In this document: piece after piece, positions 1,265 to 57,907 of the stretch
How positions within the stretch are numbered: position 1 is the first letter of the stretch
How the letters are laid out: each line of letters begins with the position of its first letter
Sequence record: OR413575.1
Reading direction: 5' to 3' (one strand)
DNA length: 64,000 nt
The notes under the pieces: generated by a model
The model's database searches: none
What the model was told of the DNA's origin: nothing
Seen by the model: the letters and a program-made list of their open reading frames with translations, nothing else
Program-made: the position numbers and the translations under genes

Positions 1265-1492
1265 ATGACTTATTCAATCGAACTGTTCCGTACCGATGAT
1301 CAATCTATGCCAGTACAGGAATCAACTGCGTATGACCACGCAGGTTTAGCATTCAATGGTTTGTTCGTAGAGAACGATGATATCTTAGATGTTAATGAAG
1401 TTGTTGCTGAGTACATCGCTAAAGGTGAAGGTCGTCAAGAGTTCCAAACTTCTTGCCCGTCTTACTTCCTGCGCATCACTCAAAACCAATAA
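1265..1492 (+). CDS. small acidic early protein (75 aa), paralog of next ORF
   Basis: AGGAG RBS; downstream of early promoter; aligns by eye with 1504..1782. Confidence 0.75.
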   Translation: MTYSIELFRTDDQSMPVQESTAYDHAGLAFNGLFVENDDILDVNEVVAEYIAKGEGRQEFQTSCPSYFLRITQNQ

Positions 1493-1503
1493 TAAAAGGG
1501 GCT

Positions 1504-1782
1504 ATGAACATGTCTTACTTATTTGAAATTATCCGTGATGATGAAGTAATTCTGGCCAGTACCTATGACACTTTAGAAGATGCGTCGCTAGCCGAAGAAT
1601 TCAAACCATATTTCGAAGAAGACCCTTCGGCAGAAGAACCAGAAGCAATCTTCGATATTGACGACCTCGTCAATGAAATGGTAATGTATCCAAATGACCG
1701 TTATGTATTCAACGGTCTGTACGGTTATGTACTTAAAGTAACTGAGCAATTTGAAGGAGGTATTGATGATCTCCCCTATTGA
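1504..1782 (+). CDS. small acidic early protein (~92 aa; start 1504 or 1510)
   Basis: ORF-track start 1453 overlaps previous gene; AAGGGG RBS precedes ATGs at 1504/1510. Confidence 0.7.
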   Translation: MNMSYLFEIIRDDEVILASTYDTLEDASLAEEFKPYFEEDPSAEEPEAIFDIDDLVNEMVMYPNDRYVFNGLYGYVLKVTEQFEGGIDDLPY

Positions 1783-2251
1783 AAAAGCAGTTAAGATAAT
1801 CGCGGCTAACGCCTTTGAACAATCTGGCTATAATAAAGCCTTAGAGGAAATGAAGATGACTGATAAAATTAAAGATGTTTGGGTAACCGTTAAAGTTGAA
1901 CTGAACGGTAAACGCGTTTCCGCTATCTACGGCGAATGGATGGATAGCCTGGCTCTTACTCTTTCGGCACGTCCGCTGATAGAGTCTGATGAAGTAGACC
2001 AGGATGTGCGCTTCAGTGCGGCTGATCAAGCTGAGCGTTTCCTGAACAAAATCGAATTCGCACCTTACCAGAACATTGGTGAGCCTGAGTTCGAAGCAGC
2101 TGTAGAACCAGGTACTGCAAATCTGCGTCAAGCAACTGCTGAATGGTTAGCGATTTATACTGCTGCAGTTGAAGCAGGTAAGATGCCTAACCCGGTATAC
2201 TGCCGTGAGTTCCCGGAGTTTGACATGATAATTACGACCATGTTAAGCTAA
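1766..2251 (+). CDS. hypothetical early protein (161 aa)
   Basis: AGGAGG RBS 5 nt before ATG 1766; followed by terminator. Confidence 0.75.
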   Translation: MISPIEKAVKIIAANAFEQSGYNKALEEMKMTDKIKDVWVTVKVELNGKRVSAIYGEWMDSLALTLSARPLIESDEVDQDVRFSAADQAERFLNKIEFAPYQNIGEPEFEAAVEPGTANLRQATAEWLAIYTAAVEAGKMPNPVYCREFPEFDMIITTMLS

Positions 2252-2259
2252 TACAATCT

Positions 2260-2290
2260 AGAAGGCCCCATCGGGCCTTCTTTTTTTTTT
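2260..2290 (+). terminator. intrinsic terminator
   Basis: AGAAGGCCC-catc-GGGCCTTCT followed by T10. Confidence 0.85.
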
Positions 2291-2345
2291 GGTTTATTTA
2301 TAAATATACGACCATTGTATGTAACTTAAACATGAGGACTTTGAA

Positions 2346-3005
2346 ATGAGTAAGCTCGACAATATCGCTAGCCAAGTGGCTAAGGGTAATCAATTGGCTG
2401 ATGAGCAGCACAAGAACGAACTGCAAGACGAAGCAGCGGTTCGTAATGCCGCGCAAGTAGATCGCGTAGGTGCGTTACCGCAAGACGCTCCTGGGGCTTC
2501 TGAAGGTTTCACTGGCGCTGCACGTAACACTGCTCCTGTTGCCGCACCGATTAAATCCAAACCGTTCTCACCGGATGTAGAGAATGCAATCGAACTCATC
2601 AACACGTATGAGTTGACTATGGGTGCATCTGCACGTGTTAACACTGATATCATCGATGATCAACAGGCGCGCCTGTATAATGCAATCATGATGATTCTGC
2701 AGACTAAAGAACACTCTGACTTCGTTGGCGCTATGGAAGTTCTCTTCCGTAAGTTCCGTGAAGATAAACTGGGCGCGTTCTGTGGTACTCGTTTACGTCG
2801 TCGTATTAACTTTATGCGTCAGCCTTCTGGCGATAAAGCAATGCTGGCTTATACGGGATTCCTGGATCTGTTACAGGTCTTCAGTAACCCGGCTAATCGT
2901 AAGTTGTATTGGACTCGTTTCAACAAACCCGCGGTACTGGCGGTACTAGCTAAACCGGAACTGCGTAAGCGCCTTGAGTCTTACATGAACAACATCAGTC
3001 GTTGA
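2346..3005 (+). CDS. conserved phiKZ-like protein, probably virion-associated (219 aa)
   Basis: GAGGA RBS; TATG late-promoter-like site at 2318-2321; low-complexity N-terminus plus helical C-terminus. Confidence 0.6.
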   Translation: MSKLDNIASQVAKGNQLADEQHKNELQDEAAVRNAAQVDRVGALPQDAPGASEGFTGAARNTAPVAAPIKSKPFSPDVENAIELINTYELTMGASARVNTDIIDDQQARLYNAIMMILQTKEHSDFVGAMEVLFRKFREDKLGAFCGTRLRRRINFMRQPSGDKAMLAYTGFLDLLQVFSNPANRKLYWTRFNKPAVLAVLAKPELRKRLESYMNNISR

Positions 3006-3011
3006 TATTAT

Positions 3012-3037
3012 AAAAGAACCCTTCGGGGTTCTTTTTG
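3012..3037 (+). terminator. intrinsic terminator
   Basis: AAAAGAACCC-TTCG-GGGTTCTTTT. Confidence 0.85.
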
Positions 3038-3090
3038 TGCTGTTACAGTAACACATCTATGTTAAGATAACTTATTTTAAATAGAGGTCG

Positions 3091-3591
3091 GTGATGTTAG
3101 AATCGATGTTAATGTATTCGCCGGGTAAAGTTTCTGGAGACGGGGAAAAAGAATATGAAGAGTTCCTCACTATTATCCAATACATAAAGGAAGTAGCAGC
3201 TAATGGGCAACCTGCTCAACATGTTGGATATCTTAGAGTAAATCTAGCGTATAATGAATCTGGTGGTTTATGGGGGACCCCATGGGAGGATTTCGTAACT
3301 ACTGATTCTAGAATAGCTAGAATAGCTACCCATTGCTTCCCTAATTACGAAGCGCGTAACAATACACACGCTAATGGAAGATATGTCGCTATTAAATTTG
3401 ATTTCCCTGAATTCAGAGGTGCATTTAAAGCACTAAATAGAAATGGGTTAACCAGCTCGTCATTCGGTACTACGTTAGGGCAACAGGTAACGGACTTCAT
3501 TTATTACGATGACGTACTTGAAGGTATGCAAAGAATGAACCCGTCCAAAGGAGAAGGTCCGATCCCGTGGGATAAACAACTTATATTGTAA
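3091..3591 (+). CDS. MLESML-family protein, paralog of 11116..11625
   Basis: GAGG RBS; N-terminal MLESML; shares FxALNRNG and C-terminal IPW/IPF motifs with 11116 ORF; TATG at 3058. Confidence 0.75.
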   Translation: MMLESMLMYSPGKVSGDGEKEYEEFLTIIQYIKEVAANGQPAQHVGYLRVNLAYNESGGLWGTPWEDFVTTDSRIARIATHCFPNYEARNNTHANGRYVAIKFDFPEFRGAFKALNRNGLTSSSFGTTLGQQVTDFIYYDDVLEGMQRMNPSKGEGPIPWDKQLIL

Positions 3592-3630: not shown

Positions 3631-4992
3631 CTATTCAGCAGTAGCTCGCCAATTCCATTTATGCGTCTTCACGGCTACACCGTGCATAAGTTTCATAAAA
3701 ATGTACATCAGGATAGAACCTATATCAACTGCTTGTGCGGACAACGAGTTAGGTTTCCCTTTATAACGTTGTCCTACGCATTTAGCGCAGAAGTTAGGAG
3801 CCTTCTCCCGACAATACTGAGGTGTGAAGATCTCCACTTGTTTACCTTCGTAATTACCCCAGTTATCTTCATCGATAATTACTTGCTTACCGGCATCCAG
3901 AATAGTTGCTCCCAGGTAAATATCCTTACTACCTTTCATCAACGTACGCCGTACACCATACTTAACACCACAATCATCGGAAGTTAATGTGGTGTTCAAG
4001 AAGAAACGTGCAATGAACTTAGCTGCTTCCCCGCCCAATGCGGTCATTGCGCCACGGTTAAACGAGCCATCGATCAGTGAGTTAACCATGTAAGGTAATT
4101 TCTCTAAATCCCAACCTTCTGTTAACGGACGGTCAATGAGAATAACTTTACCATTAGTGACATCACGTTCAATACCGAACATCAGTAATGCCTTAGCACG
4201 GACAACGTCAAATGACTTACCTGGTTGGAGATAACCGCCTTCAGGGTCATTGGCTTGATATGCTTTATCCATTGCAATCAACTCGCCCATGATCTTAGCA
4301 ATAATAGTAGGATCATCGAGTTGGTCTTTATATTCGTTCAGAAGCTCGAGACGACGTTTACGAATATTAGGATCTGTTACTAGGGTGAAAGGCGTTGCGG
4401 CTGGTACACCGAGTTGTGTCCAACCTGATAAGCTATACGCAGCATCGTAGTAATACTTCTCTAAGATATCGACGTAGATCTTAGTGGGATCACGTTCGGT
4501 TCCCATCGGAGGGAGGGACTCTAACTTAGCCGCAATGATTTTCTCTACGCTACCAAGAGAAAATCGTCCTTGTTGGAAAGGGATAACGTCACCAAACGGG
4601 TAACAGAGAACACATTGGTTTACCAACATGTTACCAATCCAAGTTGTAATGTTCTTGGATAAGTTAACCAAATCACCGGCTTTTAGCTGAATCTCTTCTT
4701 TAAAGCTGAACAATGCTTGTCCGGCTTTATACCCTTCTACGGCGGTCCATTCACCGGTATCGGGATCGAGGAACACCGGAGTACCATTAAAGTTAAATAT
4801 TTGGTAGGGGTGTTCTTCATGCGGGTAACGACGTGGTTCATCTCCACGCAGTCCCGGCTTTTCGATAATAGTTGTTGTAACCATCTCTGGTTTATCAGGG
4901 TAGGTAACAATACCCATAGCGTCAATTAGCCAAGTCTTGTAATAACAAGCACCCGCTTTTACCGCCTTCTTAAGATAATCAATACGATCCAT
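3631..4992 (-). CDS. virion RNA polymerase beta' C-terminal subunit (phiKZ gp80-like)
   Basis: beta'-like motifs: GSFNRGAMTALGGEAAK (bridge helix), SDDCG, CAKCVG Zn site, AQAVDIGS...FMKLMHG (trigger loop); split RNAP typical of phiKZ-like phages. Confidence 0.85.
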   Translation of the reverse strand: MDRIDYLKKAVKAGACYYKTWLIDAMGIVTYPDKPEMVTTTIIEKPGLRGDEPRRYPHEEHPYQIFNFNGTPVFLDPDTGEWTAVEGYKAGQALFSFKEEIQLKAGDLVNLSKNITTWIGNMLVNQCVLCYPFGDVIPFQQGRFSLGSVEKIIAAKLESLPPMGTERDPTKIYVDILEKYYYDAAYSLSGWTQLGVPAATPFTLVTDPNIRKRRLELLNEYKDQLDDPTIIAKIMGELIAMDKAYQANDPEGGYLQPGKSFDVVRAKALLMFGIERDVTNGKVILIDRPLTEGWDLEKLPYMVNSLIDGSFNRGAMTALGGEAAKFIARFFLNTTLTSDDCGVKYGVRRTLMKGSKDIYLGATILDAGKQVIIDEDNWGNYEGKQVEIFTPQYCREKAPNFCAKCVGQRYKGKPNSLSAQAVDIGSILMYIFMKLMHGVAVKTHKWNWRATAE

Positions 4993-5834: not shown

Positions 5835-5973
5835 AACCCTGTTCTCCCGTAAGGTAATTAGGAATAGAGTATAGTGAGATATAACTGTTGAATAACTCAG
5901 CTCCTCACACTTGTTCCTTAGGACTTTTCATAGAAGAGTGTAATTATTTATTTTTTTAACGAGGATTTTAAGA

Positions 5974-6596: not shown

Positions 6597-8444
6597 ATGG
6601 AACAAGATAAAGATAAAGATCTTGAACTGGGTGGTGGCATCCCAGTTCAAGTAACAGCTCCTGTAAAGCCAGCTCATCGCCCGACTCATCCTGACGATGT
6701 ACGTCCAATCAATATGGATGAAGACGGCGTGGACGACAGTGTAGTTGCTGAGATTGGACTTGAGCCTGTAGTAGCTGAACCAATCCCGGCCATCGCCACC
6801 GTTGAAGAAGTAGCAGCAGAAGGGGTTGCTGATACTACGCCCGAACCGGTAGTGGACGATAATGACGGTGCATTACCTACTGGCGAAACTCAAGTAGAAA
6901 CAGGAAGTATCTGGGACGAGTGCGATGAATTATATCAACCGCCTCAGAACTTTGCGAATCTGCAAGCGGTCTTCACGGAAGAAGAAGCCGAACGTGGCAC
7001 TGACATTACCCTGTCACCTACCAACCGCCGTAACCTCAATATTCTGGGCGATAGTAAAGAAATCAAAACGGATGAAGATTTCCTTTACATGATCCAAGCT
7101 CAGAACGCTAACCTGTTAGTGCAACCTGACGATGTACGTATCAAACGTATCAGTCGTGAAGGCTCTGACTGGATGCAGAATGTCCCTATCGAAAAACGCC
7201 TGGAGAAAGGACCTGACCGCATTGGGTTCCTAGTATCCGGCGCTAAGAAGGCTAAGTCTGCTGGCGAAGAACTTACTGGCCAAGCAGCGATGGATCGCTT
7301 CATGCAGGGCACTACGCTTGGTAGTCCCATCACTATCCCATTAGTGAACACGGGTATCTGGGTTAAGATGGCTCCCGCATCAGCTGCCTATCTGTCGGAA
7401 CTGGATCGTACTCTGGCGTACGCTCGTATGCAAGTAGGTCTGGATGTAAACGGCCTGTACGGTTCTAGCGATGACTTGATCTTCCGTGAACTGATCAACG
7501 AAGCTGCATTGAAGTTGATTACTGCGTCTAACTACGTGGTATCCAACCCAATGGATCTACGTGAAGTCATCGATGATGAAGATCGTGCAACTCTGGCATG
7601 GGGACTGGCTAAGGTTCTGTATCCGAAAGGTATCATGGTATCCATTCCATGTATTGATCCTAACTGTGGTCATATCAGCACTTTCCGCGCAAACCCGGCC
7701 CGTATGCATATCATCGACCGTAGTAAGCTGACGCCTAAGCAACAAGAATACCTGAGCCGTGGTATTGGTCGCCAGATGACGCTCGAAGATATCGAAGACT
7801 ATAAAGCGCAGTTCGCTATTGGTAATAAATCTACTGTTCGTATCATGAACCGTGAGTTTATCTTCCGTAGCCCGACTATCGCTGAGAAGTTGCAGATCGG
7901 TCGTAGTTATCTGAGTACGGTTAACCGCGCAGTAGATGAAGCCATGGCGTCCACGCCTGATGACGATACGAAACGCAGCAATATCATGCAGCAGATCACA
8001 TCCATCGAGCAGACTGTACGCTACGCGCACTATATCGCTGAAATCCGTATTTACAACGATAACGATAGCGATGATAACTATTCGTCTATTACTGACGAAG
8101 AAACTATCCGTAATATCCTTCGTACCCTGGGTAACTCCCCGGAAATGACCGAAGCGGTAATGAATGGTGTTGAAGAGTACCTGGTGGATTTAGGTGCAGC
8201 CAACATTGTTTACCCGAACACGCCATGTTCCAAGTGTAAACATACCGATGTACCAGAGAAGATGAAGAACAAGTTACTGCTTCCTTTTGATCCAGAAACT
8301 GGTTTTTTTATCCTTGCCCAACGCAAGATTTCGCTGGCGGGGGGCAATCTGCTCACAGACCTCTCGACGTTCGGTGTCGCGAATTTGGAACAAGCGGTCC
8401 TGGAAGCGCAGCAAACAGCGTCCTTCGATCGAAGCATACTTTAA
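6597..8444 (+). CDS. putative tail assembly chaperone / baseplate hub assembly protein, G-like (615 aa)
   Basis: Acidic disordered N-terminus; two Cys pairs (CIDPNC, CSKC) as in T4 gp26/gp51-type assembly factors; slippery site near 3' end. Confidence 0.55.
   Translation: MEQDKDKDLELGGGIPVQVTAPVKPAHRPTHPDDVRPINMDEDGVDDSVVAEIGLEPVVAEPIPAIATVEEVAAEGVADTTPEPVVDDNDGALPTGETQVETGSIWDECDELYQPPQNFANLQAVFTEEEAERGTDITLSPTNRRNLNILGDSKEIKTDEDFLYMIQAQNANLLVQPDDVRIKRISREGSDWMQNVPIEKRLEKGPDRIGFLVSGAKKAKSAGEELTGQAAMDRFMQGTTLGSPITIPLVNTGIWVKMAPASAAYLSELDRTLAYARMQVGLDVNGLYGSSDDLIFRELINEAALKLITASNYVVSNPMDLREVIDDEDRATLAWGLAKVLYPKGIMVSIPCIDPNCGHISTFRANPARMHIIDRSKLTPKQQEYLSRGIGRQMTLEDIEDYKAQFAIGNKSTVRIMNREFIFRSPTIAEKLQIGRSYLSTVNRAVDEAMASTPDDDTKRSNIMQQITSIEQTVRYAHYIAEIRIYNDNDSDDNYSSITDEETIRNILRTLGNSPEMTEAVMNGVEEYLVDLGAANIVYPNTPCSKCKHTDVPEKMKNKLLLPFDPETGFFILAQRKISLAGGNLLTDLSTFGVANLEQAVLEAQQTASFDRSIL
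8303..8309 (+). other. putative programmed -1 ribosomal frameshift site (T TTT TTT)
   Basis: GGT TTT TTT ATC in zero frame; -1 frame open from 8291 to the stop at 8825-8827. Confidence 0.7.
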
Positions 8445-8461
8445 CCAATCTACAGGCGCAG

Positions 8462-8827
8462 ATGATGCTACGTCGCGCCTACGATCTGGATAATAAGATA
8501 TACGACAGTGCGTATGAGAATGCGCACCCGTATGCATTGATTGAAGCCCATACTGCCGAGACTAATGCATTCAACTCGCTATTCCATCGGTACGCAGAAC
8601 GGTATGAACGATTCGGCGTAGAGTCGAGATTCCACTTATCATTGACAGAGTTTATGCAGTATAGCCCTGAAGATGTTGAGTGGATGTTATCGTATTGCGA
8701 ACATCGCCAGATGGAAGAGAAGAAAGCGCATGACGAAGCTAATGGGAAAGCCAAGTCGATCGTGACAGATAAGACACAAGTCGCATCCGACTTTAGATCG
8801 ATGATGGAACAGAAAGGCAAAGTCTGA
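8462..8827 (+). CDS. T-like C-terminal part of the frameshift product (ORF-track 121 aa; frame open from 8291)
   Basis: FHLSLTEFMQYSPEDVEWML resembles the helical gpT motif; only a weak RBS; lies in -1 frame of upstream gene. Confidence 0.7.
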   Translation: MMLRRAYDLDNKIYDSAYENAHPYALIEAHTAETNAFNSLFHRYAERYERFGVESRFHLSLTEFMQYSPEDVEWMLSYCEHRQMEEKKAHDEANGKAKSIVTDKTQVASDFRSMMEQKGKV

Positions 8828-8866
8828 CAGAGAGGAGCATTACGCTCCTCTCTGCTTTGTGCTGTC
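8828..8866 (+). terminator. hairpin element (AGAGGAGC-attac-GCTCCTCT family)
   Basis: Perfect 11-bp stem CAGAGAGGAGC/GCTCCTCTCTG; same core at 20121 and 59725. Confidence 0.7.
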
Positions 8867-11023: not shown

Positions 11024-11054
11024 AGAGAACCCTTCAGGGTTCTCTTTTTTTTTT
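11024..11054 (+). terminator. intrinsic terminator
   Basis: AGAGAACCC-TTCA-GGGTTCTCT plus T10. Confidence 0.85.
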
Positions 11055-13704: not shown

Positions 13705-13744
13705 CAGCACAGAAGGTACCCCGAAGGGTACCTTCTTTTTTTTT
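13704..13744. terminator. bidirectional terminator, repeat of 3591..3628
   Basis: Identical 38 bp; T-run on plus side. Confidence 0.85.
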
Positions 13745-29834: not shown

Positions 29835-29862
29835 AAAGAGGCCTTCGGGCCTCTTTTTTTTT
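29835..29862 (+). terminator. intrinsic terminator
   Basis: AAAGAGGCC-TTCG-GGCCTCTTT plus T-run. Confidence 0.85.
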
Positions 29863-36838: not shown

Positions 36839-36897
36839 CCTCTGGAGAGGCACTGCCCTCTCCAGAAGGTAAACGAACCATCGTTTTTTTTTTGTTT
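36839..36897. terminator. hairpin/terminator between convergent genes
   Basis: TCTGGAGAGG-cactgc-CCTCTCCAGA; A-run upstream and T9 downstream. Confidence 0.65.
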
Positions 36898-36899
36898 GA

Positions 36900-38459
36900 T
36901 TATTGAACTGCGTAAGCAGGTTCGGTTGGAGCACTTGTCCAGAAGTCATCGTCAGCCAATACAGGACGGCCGGGTTTATCCATTGCTTTTGACTCTTCGT
37001 CGTTTACATCATCTAAAATACCCAACTCAGTAAGCTGATACCAGCATACTTTATCTGCTTCTGGCGTATCATTAACACCACGGTGTTTACCACGTCCATA
37101 ACCTACGTAAGTAATACCATTAATCTTCAACTTCTGTAAGTTGATTTCCAGGTCGACTTCCTGATGGAGAGAACGACATTCTTTATAGTAACCACGGTTC
37201 AAGATCTCTTCCAAGAACTTGTTCGGACGGTCACGTTCAATCATCTGTGCTTCCGTAGACAACTGGTGAGGAGAAATGAAGAATGTATTACGAACAGTCA
37301 TCATGTTACGCACACGTTTCCACAACAGTTGTTTGTCTTGACCAGCGATAGTCGATTCGATACCGCGAGTAGACATCATTGACAGATAGTCGAAGCAGCA
37401 AACAATGATTTCATGGTTCTTAGCTTCTAAACCGTAGATCATGGTCTGGAAGTCAGTTAAGGTGAACTCGTCTGGGTTAATACGAACCATGAGTACACGC
37501 CAACCACGTTGCCCCATTGTTTCCTTAATGAACTTAGCAGCTTCTACAGGATCAATCGACTTAAGATCTGGTGCAACCTTCTTGTGGACGTTCATGTAGC
37601 ACTGACCATACAATTCACGAATGTTGATTGTCAGGTCGTTCTCTGCTGAGATAATAAGAATAGTAGGGATGGCACCCTCTTTGTGCGGTTTAGGATCGGT
37701 ATACATTGCAATGCCGCGAGTAATCATCATCGCAGTTACAGATTTACCATGGTGACTCAAACCACCTACCACACAACACTCACCACGACGACCGCCCATT
37801 TGTTTACCGGTCATTTTGTTCAGACCTTGTAACGGGAACTTTAAAATCTCGTCAGGTGATATCTCACGCTGAGCAAAGTCGAAGATTTCTTCAAGCTGTT
37901 CATCATTCTCAAAGTCGACAGAGTTAACAACTGCGTTAACACCTTCGTATTCTCCCTCACCTGTATCAGATACAGCGTAAGATTCAGCACGTTCAATAAT
38001 GACACGACTAGCTTCCGCTAGGTTATATTCCTTACCACTATAAACGTATTCTTTTGCAATGCCTTGTAACATTGTCACAAAGCGCATTTTCTTTAACTGG
38101 TCGTTTATCTCACGAACCAGGATTGAGATCTCTGCAGCAATACCTTCTTCATCGAGGTCTTGCGTAATAGACTGGCTAATTAAATCTGATACGTATGTAT
38201 CGTGGTTAGCCATAATTGTAACTTGACGCATTAATGCTTTACGGTCGATCTTTTCGTTAGATTGCGTACAAAGACGAGTGATAAGAGTACGTAAAGATAC
38301 ATACACGTTAGTAGAAGCGTCTGCATCTTTATGACCAATACCCTGTAATTCGGACATGGCCTCTTTAACGGTGTCTATTACAACACTATTTTTTTGTTCC
38401 TGATGCGATCCCCAGAATAGTAGTAAAAGGGAGTTGATGATAACAAGTTCCTGGTTCAT
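36900..38459 (-). CDS. dnaB: replicative DnaB-like (SF4) helicase (phiKZ gp118-like)
   Basis: Walker A GGLSHHGKS, ISAEN, Walker B CCFDYL, SPHQLS, GRGKHRG. Confidence 0.9.
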   Translation of the reverse strand: MNQELVIINSLLLLFWGSHQEQKNSVVIDTVKEAMSELQGIGHKDADASTNVYVSLRTLITRLCTQSNEKIDRKALMRQVTIMANHDTYVSDLISQSITQDLDEEGIAAEISILVREINDQLKKMRFVTMLQGIAKEYVYSGKEYNLAEASRVIIERAESYAVSDTGEGEYEGVNAVVNSVDFENDEQLEEIFDFAQREISPDEILKFPLQGLNKMTGKQMGGRRGECCVVGGLSHHGKSVTAMMITRGIAMYTDPKPHKEGAIPTILIISAENDLTINIRELYGQCYMNVHKKVAPDLKSIDPVEAAKFIKETMGQRGWRVLMVRINPDEFTLTDFQTMIYGLEAKNHEIIVCCFDYLSMMSTRGIESTIAGQDKQLLWKRVRNMMTVRNTFFISPHQLSTEAQMIERDRPNKFLEEILNRGYYKECRSLHQEVDLEINLQKLKINGITYVGYGRGKHRGVNDTPEADKVCWYQLTELGILDDVNDEESKAMDKPGRPVLADDDFWTSAPTEPAYAVQ

Positions 38460-47122: not shown

Positions 47123-47157
47123 AAAAAGAAGGGCCCAACGGCCCTTCTTTTTTTTTT
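47123..47157. terminator. bidirectional terminator
   Basis: AAAAAGAAGGGCC-caac-GGCCCTTCTTTTT between convergent genes. Confidence 0.9.
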
Positions 47158-53831: not shown

Positions 53832-53866
53832 AAAAAATAGGTGGGTTTCCCCACCTATTTTTTTTT
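53832..53866 (+). terminator. intrinsic terminator
   Basis: AAAAAATAGGTGGG-tttc-CCCACCTATTTTTT. Confidence 0.85.
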
Positions 53867-57876: not shown

Positions 57877-57907
57877 AAGGAGCCTACGGGCTCCTTCTTT
57901 TTTTTTT
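57877..57907 (+). terminator. intrinsic terminator
   Basis: AAGGAGCC-tacg-GGCTCCTT plus long T-run. Confidence 0.85.

Follow-up and report, generated by a model that had tools for sequence, protein, structure and literature searches.

Salmonella phage SPLA10 (OR413575.1, matched at 100% identity) is a jumbo phage of 210 kb. Its first 64 kb contain two adjacent open reading frames (ORFs) that raise a simple question: are they two genes, or two parts of one? This 64,000-nucleotide (nt) stretch is referred to below as the window. The larger ORF (6597-8444) encodes 615 amino acids (aa) and the smaller one (8462-8827) encodes 121 aa; both are labelled hypothetical in GenBank, and two separate genes are annotated at the locus in all of the GenBank records examined. 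The 615-aa protein falls into PHROG family phrog_4585 and the 121-aa ORF into phrog_12109. The larger gene is cg18 of the Chimalliviridae core genes (Goslar gp081 / PhiKZ gp077 / RAY gp267), which is listed as hypothetical in the core-genome table of Prichard et al. (PMC10299810 supplement). An earlier reading of the SPLA10 sequence, the original prediction, proposed that a -1 frameshift joins the body of the 615-aa protein to the downstream ORF, and the comparative evidence gathered here strongly supports that proposal. A programmed -1 ribosomal frameshift at a run of T, giving two isoforms, is the best explanation of the locus and, on the strength of sequence comparison, a very probable one. 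The recoding mechanism is well understood; what is new is its recognition in a core gene of a phage family that has been studied intensively.

The proposed slip site lies near the 3′-end of the larger ORF. In the frame of ORF 6597-8444, positions 8301-8312 read as the codons GGT TTT TTT ATC, and the predicted heptamer T_TTT_TTT (8303-8309) is found there in the correct register. The -1 frame also behaves as predicted: following the TGA at 8288-8290 it is open for 178 sense codons to a stop at 8825-8827, absorbing ORF 8462-8827. The first ATG, GTG or TTG in this frame is at 8462, 57 codons past the TGA, so that the absence of ATG from these codons that had been pointed out extends to GTG and TTG. 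The sizes proposed for the fusion hold as well, with a body of 571 residues before the site and an extension of 172 residues, and the dual-coded stretch, put at about 135 nt, measures 136 nt. The 0-frame tail past the site is 44 residues long. Within the extension, the 51 codons that precede the annotated small ORF (8309-8461, here called the bridge) contain no ATG, GTG or TTG.

In the proposed mechanism, the majority of ribosomes would pass the heptamer without slipping and produce the 615-residue protein. In a minority, the two tRNA-Phe on UUU UUU (8304-8309) would slip back by one base and re-pair on 8303-8308, and these ribosomes would continue from 8309 in the -1 frame and terminate at 8825-8827. 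The long isoform would consist of the 571-residue body and a mainly helical C-terminal domain of 172 residues, replacing the 44-residue 0-frame tail, and the annotated gene 8462-8827 would thus be mostly or wholly the 3′ part of the long isoform and not an independent gene. The tandem Phe codons in register, along with the preceding T, appear to fit a simultaneous slippage of two tRNA-Phe.

Relatives of the locus were collected at several depths. With blastn, Serratia phage PCH45 matched at 69% identity, while only the dual-coded positions 8301-8399 of the region matched Erwinia phages PhiEaH1 and vB_Ea277G. With tblastn, 192 phage records contained the large protein, among them that of phiKZ with PHIKZ077, and 29 contained the small ORF, every time in the -1 frame with respect to the large gene. 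A hidden Markov model search of 1.84 billion representatives returned 1397 clusters with E no higher than 0.001. Among the best 150, lengths run from 453 to 657 aa, the proteins end a few residues past a Phe-Phe pair, and fused proteins of at least 700 aa are absent. Natural in-frame fusions (Rosetta-stone evidence) were likewise not found among 15 close homologues. We examined the loci of 8 isolates, 59 IMG/VR entries, 7 metagenomic close relatives, Goslar, AH04 and a Vibrio phage, and the isolates with the same arrangement are PCH45, vB_Ea277G, Moabite, Totoro, KpLz-2_45, FBKp24, phiKZ, Goslar, AH04 and the Vibrio phage; the 59 IMG/VR loci share it as well. Clustering at 90% nucleotide identity gave the 53 clusters to which all statistics on the site and the frames refer. 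Loci were collected with two patterns, one of which held Phe-Phe; this biases the sample toward Phe-Phe and not toward TTT or the flanking bases. The two frames were each searched, aligned and folded on their own.

The slip site is constrained at positions that are silent in the 0 frame. The first Phe codon is TTT in 53 of 53 clusters, compared with a TTT share of 0.36 for Phe codons elsewhere in the same genes, and the second codon is TTT in 32, TTC in 18 and another codon in 3. The base 5′ of the first Phe codon, which is the third base of codons for nine amino acids, is T in 46/53 clusters, compared with a background of 0.30. The codon that follows the heptamer ends in C in 46/53 (background 0.28), and through this C, 87% of clusters have a proline at residue 2 of the extension. 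Four successive third positions of the 0 frame each carry 1.06-2.0 bits of information, against about 0-0.3 bits at nearby third positions. In several genes, other Phe-Phe pairs slightly upstream are written TTC TTC or TTC TTT. A check of orthologues for a slippery site had been proposed with the original prediction, and a complete in-register heptamer (T_TTT_TTT, T_TTT_TTC or T_TTT_TTG) is present in 45 of the 53 clusters, in addition to the TTT common to all of them.

The -1 frame is conserved along with the site. Counted from the site, it runs open for 150-195 codons (median 164) in every one of the 53 clusters, and the summed log10 probability of all overlaps being open is -44. In the gene body the -1 frame has a stop frequency of 9% per codon, and 32/53 clusters have a stop within 15 codons 5′ of the site; together, these figures place the beginning of the open frame at the T-run. 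The 0-frame stop follows the T-run by 9-52 codons; the overlap of the 0 and -1 frames has a median of 15 codons and amounts to 43-52 codons in the SPLA10 clade. The +1 frame closes 0-62 codons beyond the 0-frame stop. Conservation ahead of the annotated start, another check that had been proposed, is also observed: the bridge matches the annotated part of the ORF in its degree of conservation, and substitutions in it are biased toward third positions of the -1 frame. From the 0-frame stop up to the first start codon, moderately diverged pairs differ at -1 codon positions 1:2:3 in the ratio 63:32:112, a pattern similar to that of the rest of the -1 ORF (839:560:1884). Beyond the proline at residue 2, the extension carries an aromatic-Gly pair at residues 26-27 (94% and 72% of clusters).

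The original prediction included a stimulator hairpin just downstream of the heptamer, and the pairing of 8314-8319 with 8342-8347, with an inner 8322-8324/8337-8339, is indeed the minimum-free-energy structure. The fold of 8303-8360 reaches -19.7 kcal/mol (z = -3.18), a value as good being found in 1/200 shuffles. The hairpin is found in most of the ten sequences of the SPLA10 (SPLA10/PCH45) clade, where it may act as a local stimulator; it is absent from the rest of the family. No Rfam frameshift element matched.

Several observations weigh against a programmed ribosomal frameshift. There is no family-wide downstream structure, since the 40 nt downstream of the site fold like shuffled sequence (mean z -0.09). 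An upstream Shine-Dalgarno-like element is present in 2/53 clusters against a background of 4%, which is no enrichment. The SPLA10-clade hairpin shows no compensatory changes; the dual-coded stretch 8309-8444 is almost invariant in DNA within the clade, and because it is near-invariant and dual-coded there is no covariation by which the hairpin could be proven, while dual coding alone could explain its conservation. The heptamer itself is not complete everywhere: in seven clusters the first base is not T but G (six clusters) or C (one cluster), and three clusters keep T_TTT only, two of them with the preceding T, such that tandem slippage would be imperfect there. Lastly, the two Phe residues are conserved in the protein itself, and one of the locus-collecting patterns contained them.

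Four loci (L035, L053, L064 and L079) have lost the tandem heptamer and show T_TTT plus another codon, and their -1 frame is still open for 164-176 codons. These loci would imply slippage of a single tRNA (P-site slippage) or a lower efficiency.

The same two isoforms would also arise if the phage RNA polymerase added one U on the T-run. Transcriptional slippage of this kind would suit a signal that is a homopolymer, here 5-9 T across clusters, and would need neither the conserved RNA stimulator nor the upstream Shine-Dalgarno-like element that were not found in the family. These phages also use their own non-canonical multisubunit polymerases, and the neighbouring gene encodes a virion RNA polymerase subunit. 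Cellular-type polymerases, however, usually require longer runs for transcriptional slippage, and the T-run is only 5-6 long in 16/53 clusters. In addition, the second Phe codon ends in C in 18/53 clusters, where the run is shorter and the X_XXY_YYZ heptamer is still valid. A TTC second codon keeps the heptamer yet shortens the run, which favours ribosomal over transcriptional slippage, and we infer on this basis that the slip is made by the ribosome. Slippage during transcription is therefore a rather unlikely source of the two isoforms, though one to be kept in view.

Taking the annotation at face value, the T-run would be mere Phe codons between two ordinary genes, and the small ORF would be translated from ATG 8462 or by coupling to the upstream stop. 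In addition to the agreement of all GenBank records examined, an ATG or GTG is present near the homologous position in SPLA10, PCH45 and several others, and in SPLA10 a weak AGG lies 5 nt 5′ of ATG 8462. Across the family, however, the start codons vary in position and are absent from most of the extension in several lineages. The first ATG, GTG or TTG is found 2-151 codons into the extension, depending on the cluster; it comes as late as codon 151 of 154 in L027 and codon 143 of 195 in L059, and L067 is without any ATG. The extension is free of start codons for 85 codons from the site in phiKZ and for 77 codons in Ea277G. The sequence 5′ of the starts is conserved and evolves as -1-frame coding sequence, and two separate genes leave both the silent-site constraint on the heptamer and the constant length of the extension from the T-run unexplained. 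We consider this arrangement very improbable.

A further alternative keeps the extension but not the frameshift, with non-canonical initiation or termination-reinitiation near the 0-frame stop. The position of that stop, 9-52 codons past the T-run with the -1 frame open across it, would allow such an event. Conservation in the -1 frame nevertheless starts right at the T-run, with Pro at residue 2 and aromatic-Gly at 26-27, and the open frame begins at the T-run and not at the 0-frame stop, leaving initiation near the stop with even less to recommend it. That the true gene is a single long ORF, broken by homopolymer sequencing or assembly error or by decay, is the least probable of all: homopolymers are error-prone and one record, from Xanthomonas phage RTH11, has a deviant frame arrangement, but the same -1 offset recurs with runs of 5-9 in over 70 loci, of which 57 differ at 90% identity or belong to other phages, these loci come from isolates and metagenomes of different sequencing groups, and the best 150 of the 1397 clusters include no fused protein of at least 700 aa.

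In the RTH11 record (OQ790161.1, L080), the gene at 1297-3180 has a short tail and an extension that are each one frame off the gene body. This displacement amounts to one apparent frame break, and the annotated ORF is unusually long at 627 aa. The break may be a homopolymer miscall or a genuine variant.

The programmed -1 frameshift also agrees with the layout of the locus, the features of which are listed in Table 1. No promoter-like site is found on the + strand between the slip site and the downstream ORF, which places both reading frames on one transcript, and the transcription unit with both frames ends at the terminator-like hairpin. The gene order runs from a gp78-like ORF through the large gene and the small ORF to DNA polymerase or helicase genes, with the virion RNA polymerase beta subunit and a gp79-like head protein encoded on the opposite strand. 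This neighbourhood of cg18 is syntenic in SPLA10, PCH45, Moabite, KpLz-2_45, FBKp24, phiKZ and Goslar.

Table 1. Features of the cg18 locus in SPLA10 (window coordinates).
Feature	Position	Strand	Remarks
0-frame ORF, 615 aa	6597..8444	+	Homologue of phiKZ gp77 / Goslar gp081 / PCH45 604-aa protein
-1-frame TGA	8288..8290	+	Five codons 5′ of the slip site's first Phe codon; start of open -1 frame
Slippery heptamer T_TTT_TTT, X_XXY_YYZ register	8303..8309	+	Third base of GGT and the codons of Phe residues F570 and F571
-1-frame extension, 172 codons + stop	8309..8827	+	Includes annotated 121-aa ORF 8462-8827
Dual-coded stretch, 136 nt (45 codons)	8309..8444	+	0-frame stop at 8442-8444
Predicted RNA hairpin, candidate stimulator	8314..8347	+	Begins 4 nt past the heptamer
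Terminator-like hairpin, 11 pairs	8828..8854	+	Immediately 3′ of the -1-frame stop

Within the window, 12 sites on the + strand have at least 7 T, and 8303-8309 is the only one in sense orientation inside a gene; of the remaining 11, ten lie between genes as terminator-like tails, and one runs antisense to a helicase gene. Runs of at least 7 T give 36 matches against 16.7 expected in shuffles, a twofold excess, all on the + strand. Apart from the frameshift site, nearly all of the T runs are intergenic and lie shortly 3′ of + strand genes (1-10, 2281-2290, 5951-5957, 11045-11054, 13736-13744, 29854-29862, 36884-36893, 47148-47157, 53858-53866 and 57898-57907), and they are probably the terminator tails of SPLA10 transcription units. 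The + strand of the window has no run of seven A. An A7 is found at 38389-38395 in the sense strand of a DnaB-like helicase gene (- strand, 36900-38459), about 65 nt from the gene start, with 6/7 of its A's in slippery-heptamer register. A second in-register heptamer, G_GGG_GGC at 8339-8345, is located in the dual-coded stretch and the 3′ arm of the predicted hairpin; it is confined to the SPLA10/PCH45 clade, and slippage on it would lead into the same -1 frame.

The protein features of the two pieces give some indication of function. The AlphaFold model of the 615-aa protein has a predicted local distance difference test score (pLDDT) of 83.4 and a predicted template modelling score of 0.79. 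Residues 1-91 (6597-6870) are predicted to be disordered (pLDDT 40-48), show little conservation and differ in length from one relative to the next, and the folded core houses four near-invariant cysteines (C352, C357, C544 and C547). A fold search of the PDB with this model gave nothing better than E 0.45, and a PDB sequence profile search gave no match. Neither the 615-aa protein nor the 121-aa ORF matched Pfam, and their PHROG matches were to families of unknown function only. The model of the extension is helical and of low confidence (pLDDT 60), and a BFVD structure search with it returned uncharacterised jumbo-phage ORFs only.

Mass spectrometry of Goslar virions detected gp081 with 24 peptides, at about 15-35 copy-equivalents, and the downstream gp082 with one peptide, at about 2-5 copy-equivalents (10.64898/2026.04.21.720040, Table S4). 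The product of the downstream ORF is thus roughly one seventh of the upstream protein, a figure based on a single peptide, and this counts as indirect evidence for the frameshift. Chimallin, PhuZ and thymidylate synthase were also detected in this preparation of CsCl-purified virions (10.64898/2026.04.21.720040), and their presence makes the membership of gp081 in the Goslar virion uncertain. Goslar gp081 is also absent from the 28 proteins modelled in the Goslar virion. Tentatively, cg18 may be a zinc-binding protein that is associated with the virion or takes part in its assembly, possibly as a distant relative of T4 gp26. The main text of the PCH45 transposon-sequencing preprint mentions neither cg18 nor the downstream ORF.

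If a programmed -1 frameshift is indeed at work, the locus is misannotated in all genomes of the family, with two genes, or a gene and a "gap", standing for one recoded gene. The small downstream ORFs, annotated at 44-155 aa, would carry arbitrary starts, and the phiKZ annotation would owe a 218-nt "non-coding" gap to the same cause. In phiKZ (NC_004629.1, L008), these 218 nt (3707-3924) are annotated as non-coding between PHIKZ077 and PHIKZ076.4; they are open in the -1 frame and form part of a 165-codon extension from phiKZ's own T_TTT_TTT. One core protein of the nucleus-forming jumbo phages would exist in two isoforms at a ratio set by recoding, and the family would offer hundreds of divergent U_UUU_UUY sites, functional with no obvious conserved stimulator, as a natural test set. 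The long isoform could be sought anew in the proteomic and ribosome-profiling data that already exist for phiKZ, PCH45 and Goslar. We found no paper that connects Chimalliviridae with frameshifting or treats PHIKZ077 by name, subscription journals being outside the search, and the core-genome paper, a 2025 review and the Goslar structure preprint make no mention of a frameshift at cg18.

Phage tail genes offer well-known frameshift pairs for comparison, namely the tail assembly chaperones G/GT of lambda, E/E+E′ of P2 and those of Mu, and pairs of the lambda G/GT type are reportedly the subject of work by Xu, Hendrix and Duda from 2004. As in lambda G/GT, a -1 slip on a heptamer near the 3′-end of the first ORF would give cg18 a minor, C-terminally extended isoform, the extension is drawn from an overlapping downstream ORF, and the arrangement outlasts wide divergence of the proteins. 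The original prediction went further and took the SPLA10 pair for an unusually large G/GT tape-measure chaperone pair, a claim that finds no support here. Unlike G/GT, cg18 is not located between the tail tube and tape-measure genes in any of the seven phages with the shared neighbourhood, from SPLA10 to Goslar; its body is 450-660 aa long, compared with about 100-150 aa for the first ORF of G/GT; and its protein has a four-Cys site. Goslar gp081 was detected in a virion preparation, albeit one with contaminants, whereas G/GT proteins are not known to occur in virions. The search for tail assembly chaperone kinship came back empty in Pfam and, for the fold of the extension, led to the uncharacterised jumbo-phage ORFs alone; neither piece matched the tail-chaperone or lambda gpT families of Pfam and PHROG. 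For the C-terminal motif that the original prediction likened to gpT, none of the tools gave a match of that kind. With location, size, and membership in a sequence or fold family all failing, we reject an identity with G/GT tail chaperones. The likeness is one of logic, not of family.

A different set of hints leads to T4 gp26 (PF12322), the family of which is listed as a hub assembly chaperone (PMC3004832). Both proteins contain a Cys pair, a second Cys pair and a near-invariant Phe-Phe by the C-terminus, in the same order; in the gp26 family the Phe-Phe is four residues from the C-terminus (L076, T4 NC_000866.4 7803-8429, - strand). PF12322 is the top Pfam match among relatives of cg18, although a weak one (4/64, best E 0.0011), and phrog_150, "baseplate hub", matches 2/64 relatives at E 1.6e-5. 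A BFVD search with the 615-aa model returned family members and a "Baseplate protein" of an uncultured myovirus, along with a weaker match to "Baseplate hub assembly protein, T4-like" (E 1.9e-5, TM 0.49 on the target). On the other hand, a profile-profile comparison of the cg18 and gp26 families with hhalign was not significant (probability 3-25%), gp26 is 208 aa long, the SPLA10 615-aa protein itself has no Pfam match, and the PDB fold and sequence profile searches found no solved gp26 structure. T4 gene 26 also makes two products (26 and 26′), but 26′ is internal and in frame and does not arise by frameshifting; the Phe-Phe codons of gene 26 are not slippery, and gene 25 follows. These are weak hints of a remote kinship. 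It is conceivable, if doubtful, that the cg18 pair is a tail or baseplate-hub assembly chaperone of the phiKZ-like nucleus-forming phages, descended from a gp26-like zinc-binding hub chaperone, with the extension tethering it to a tail or hub component and a G/GT-like logic having arisen in a different family and place.

Frameshift pairs are also known among phage structural genes, as in the capsid proteins 10A/10B of T7. Here, too, a 3′-proximal -1 frameshift gives a minor, C-terminally extended and virion-associated form at a fixed ratio, and in this the T7 pair resembles what is proposed for cg18. The families are unrelated, and the extension of cg18 differs from that of 10B in being a conserved domain of about 165 residues with a gene annotation of its own. 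A fixed ratio of short to long isoform would supply a minor species with an extra interaction domain, as it does in other frameshift pairs of phages.

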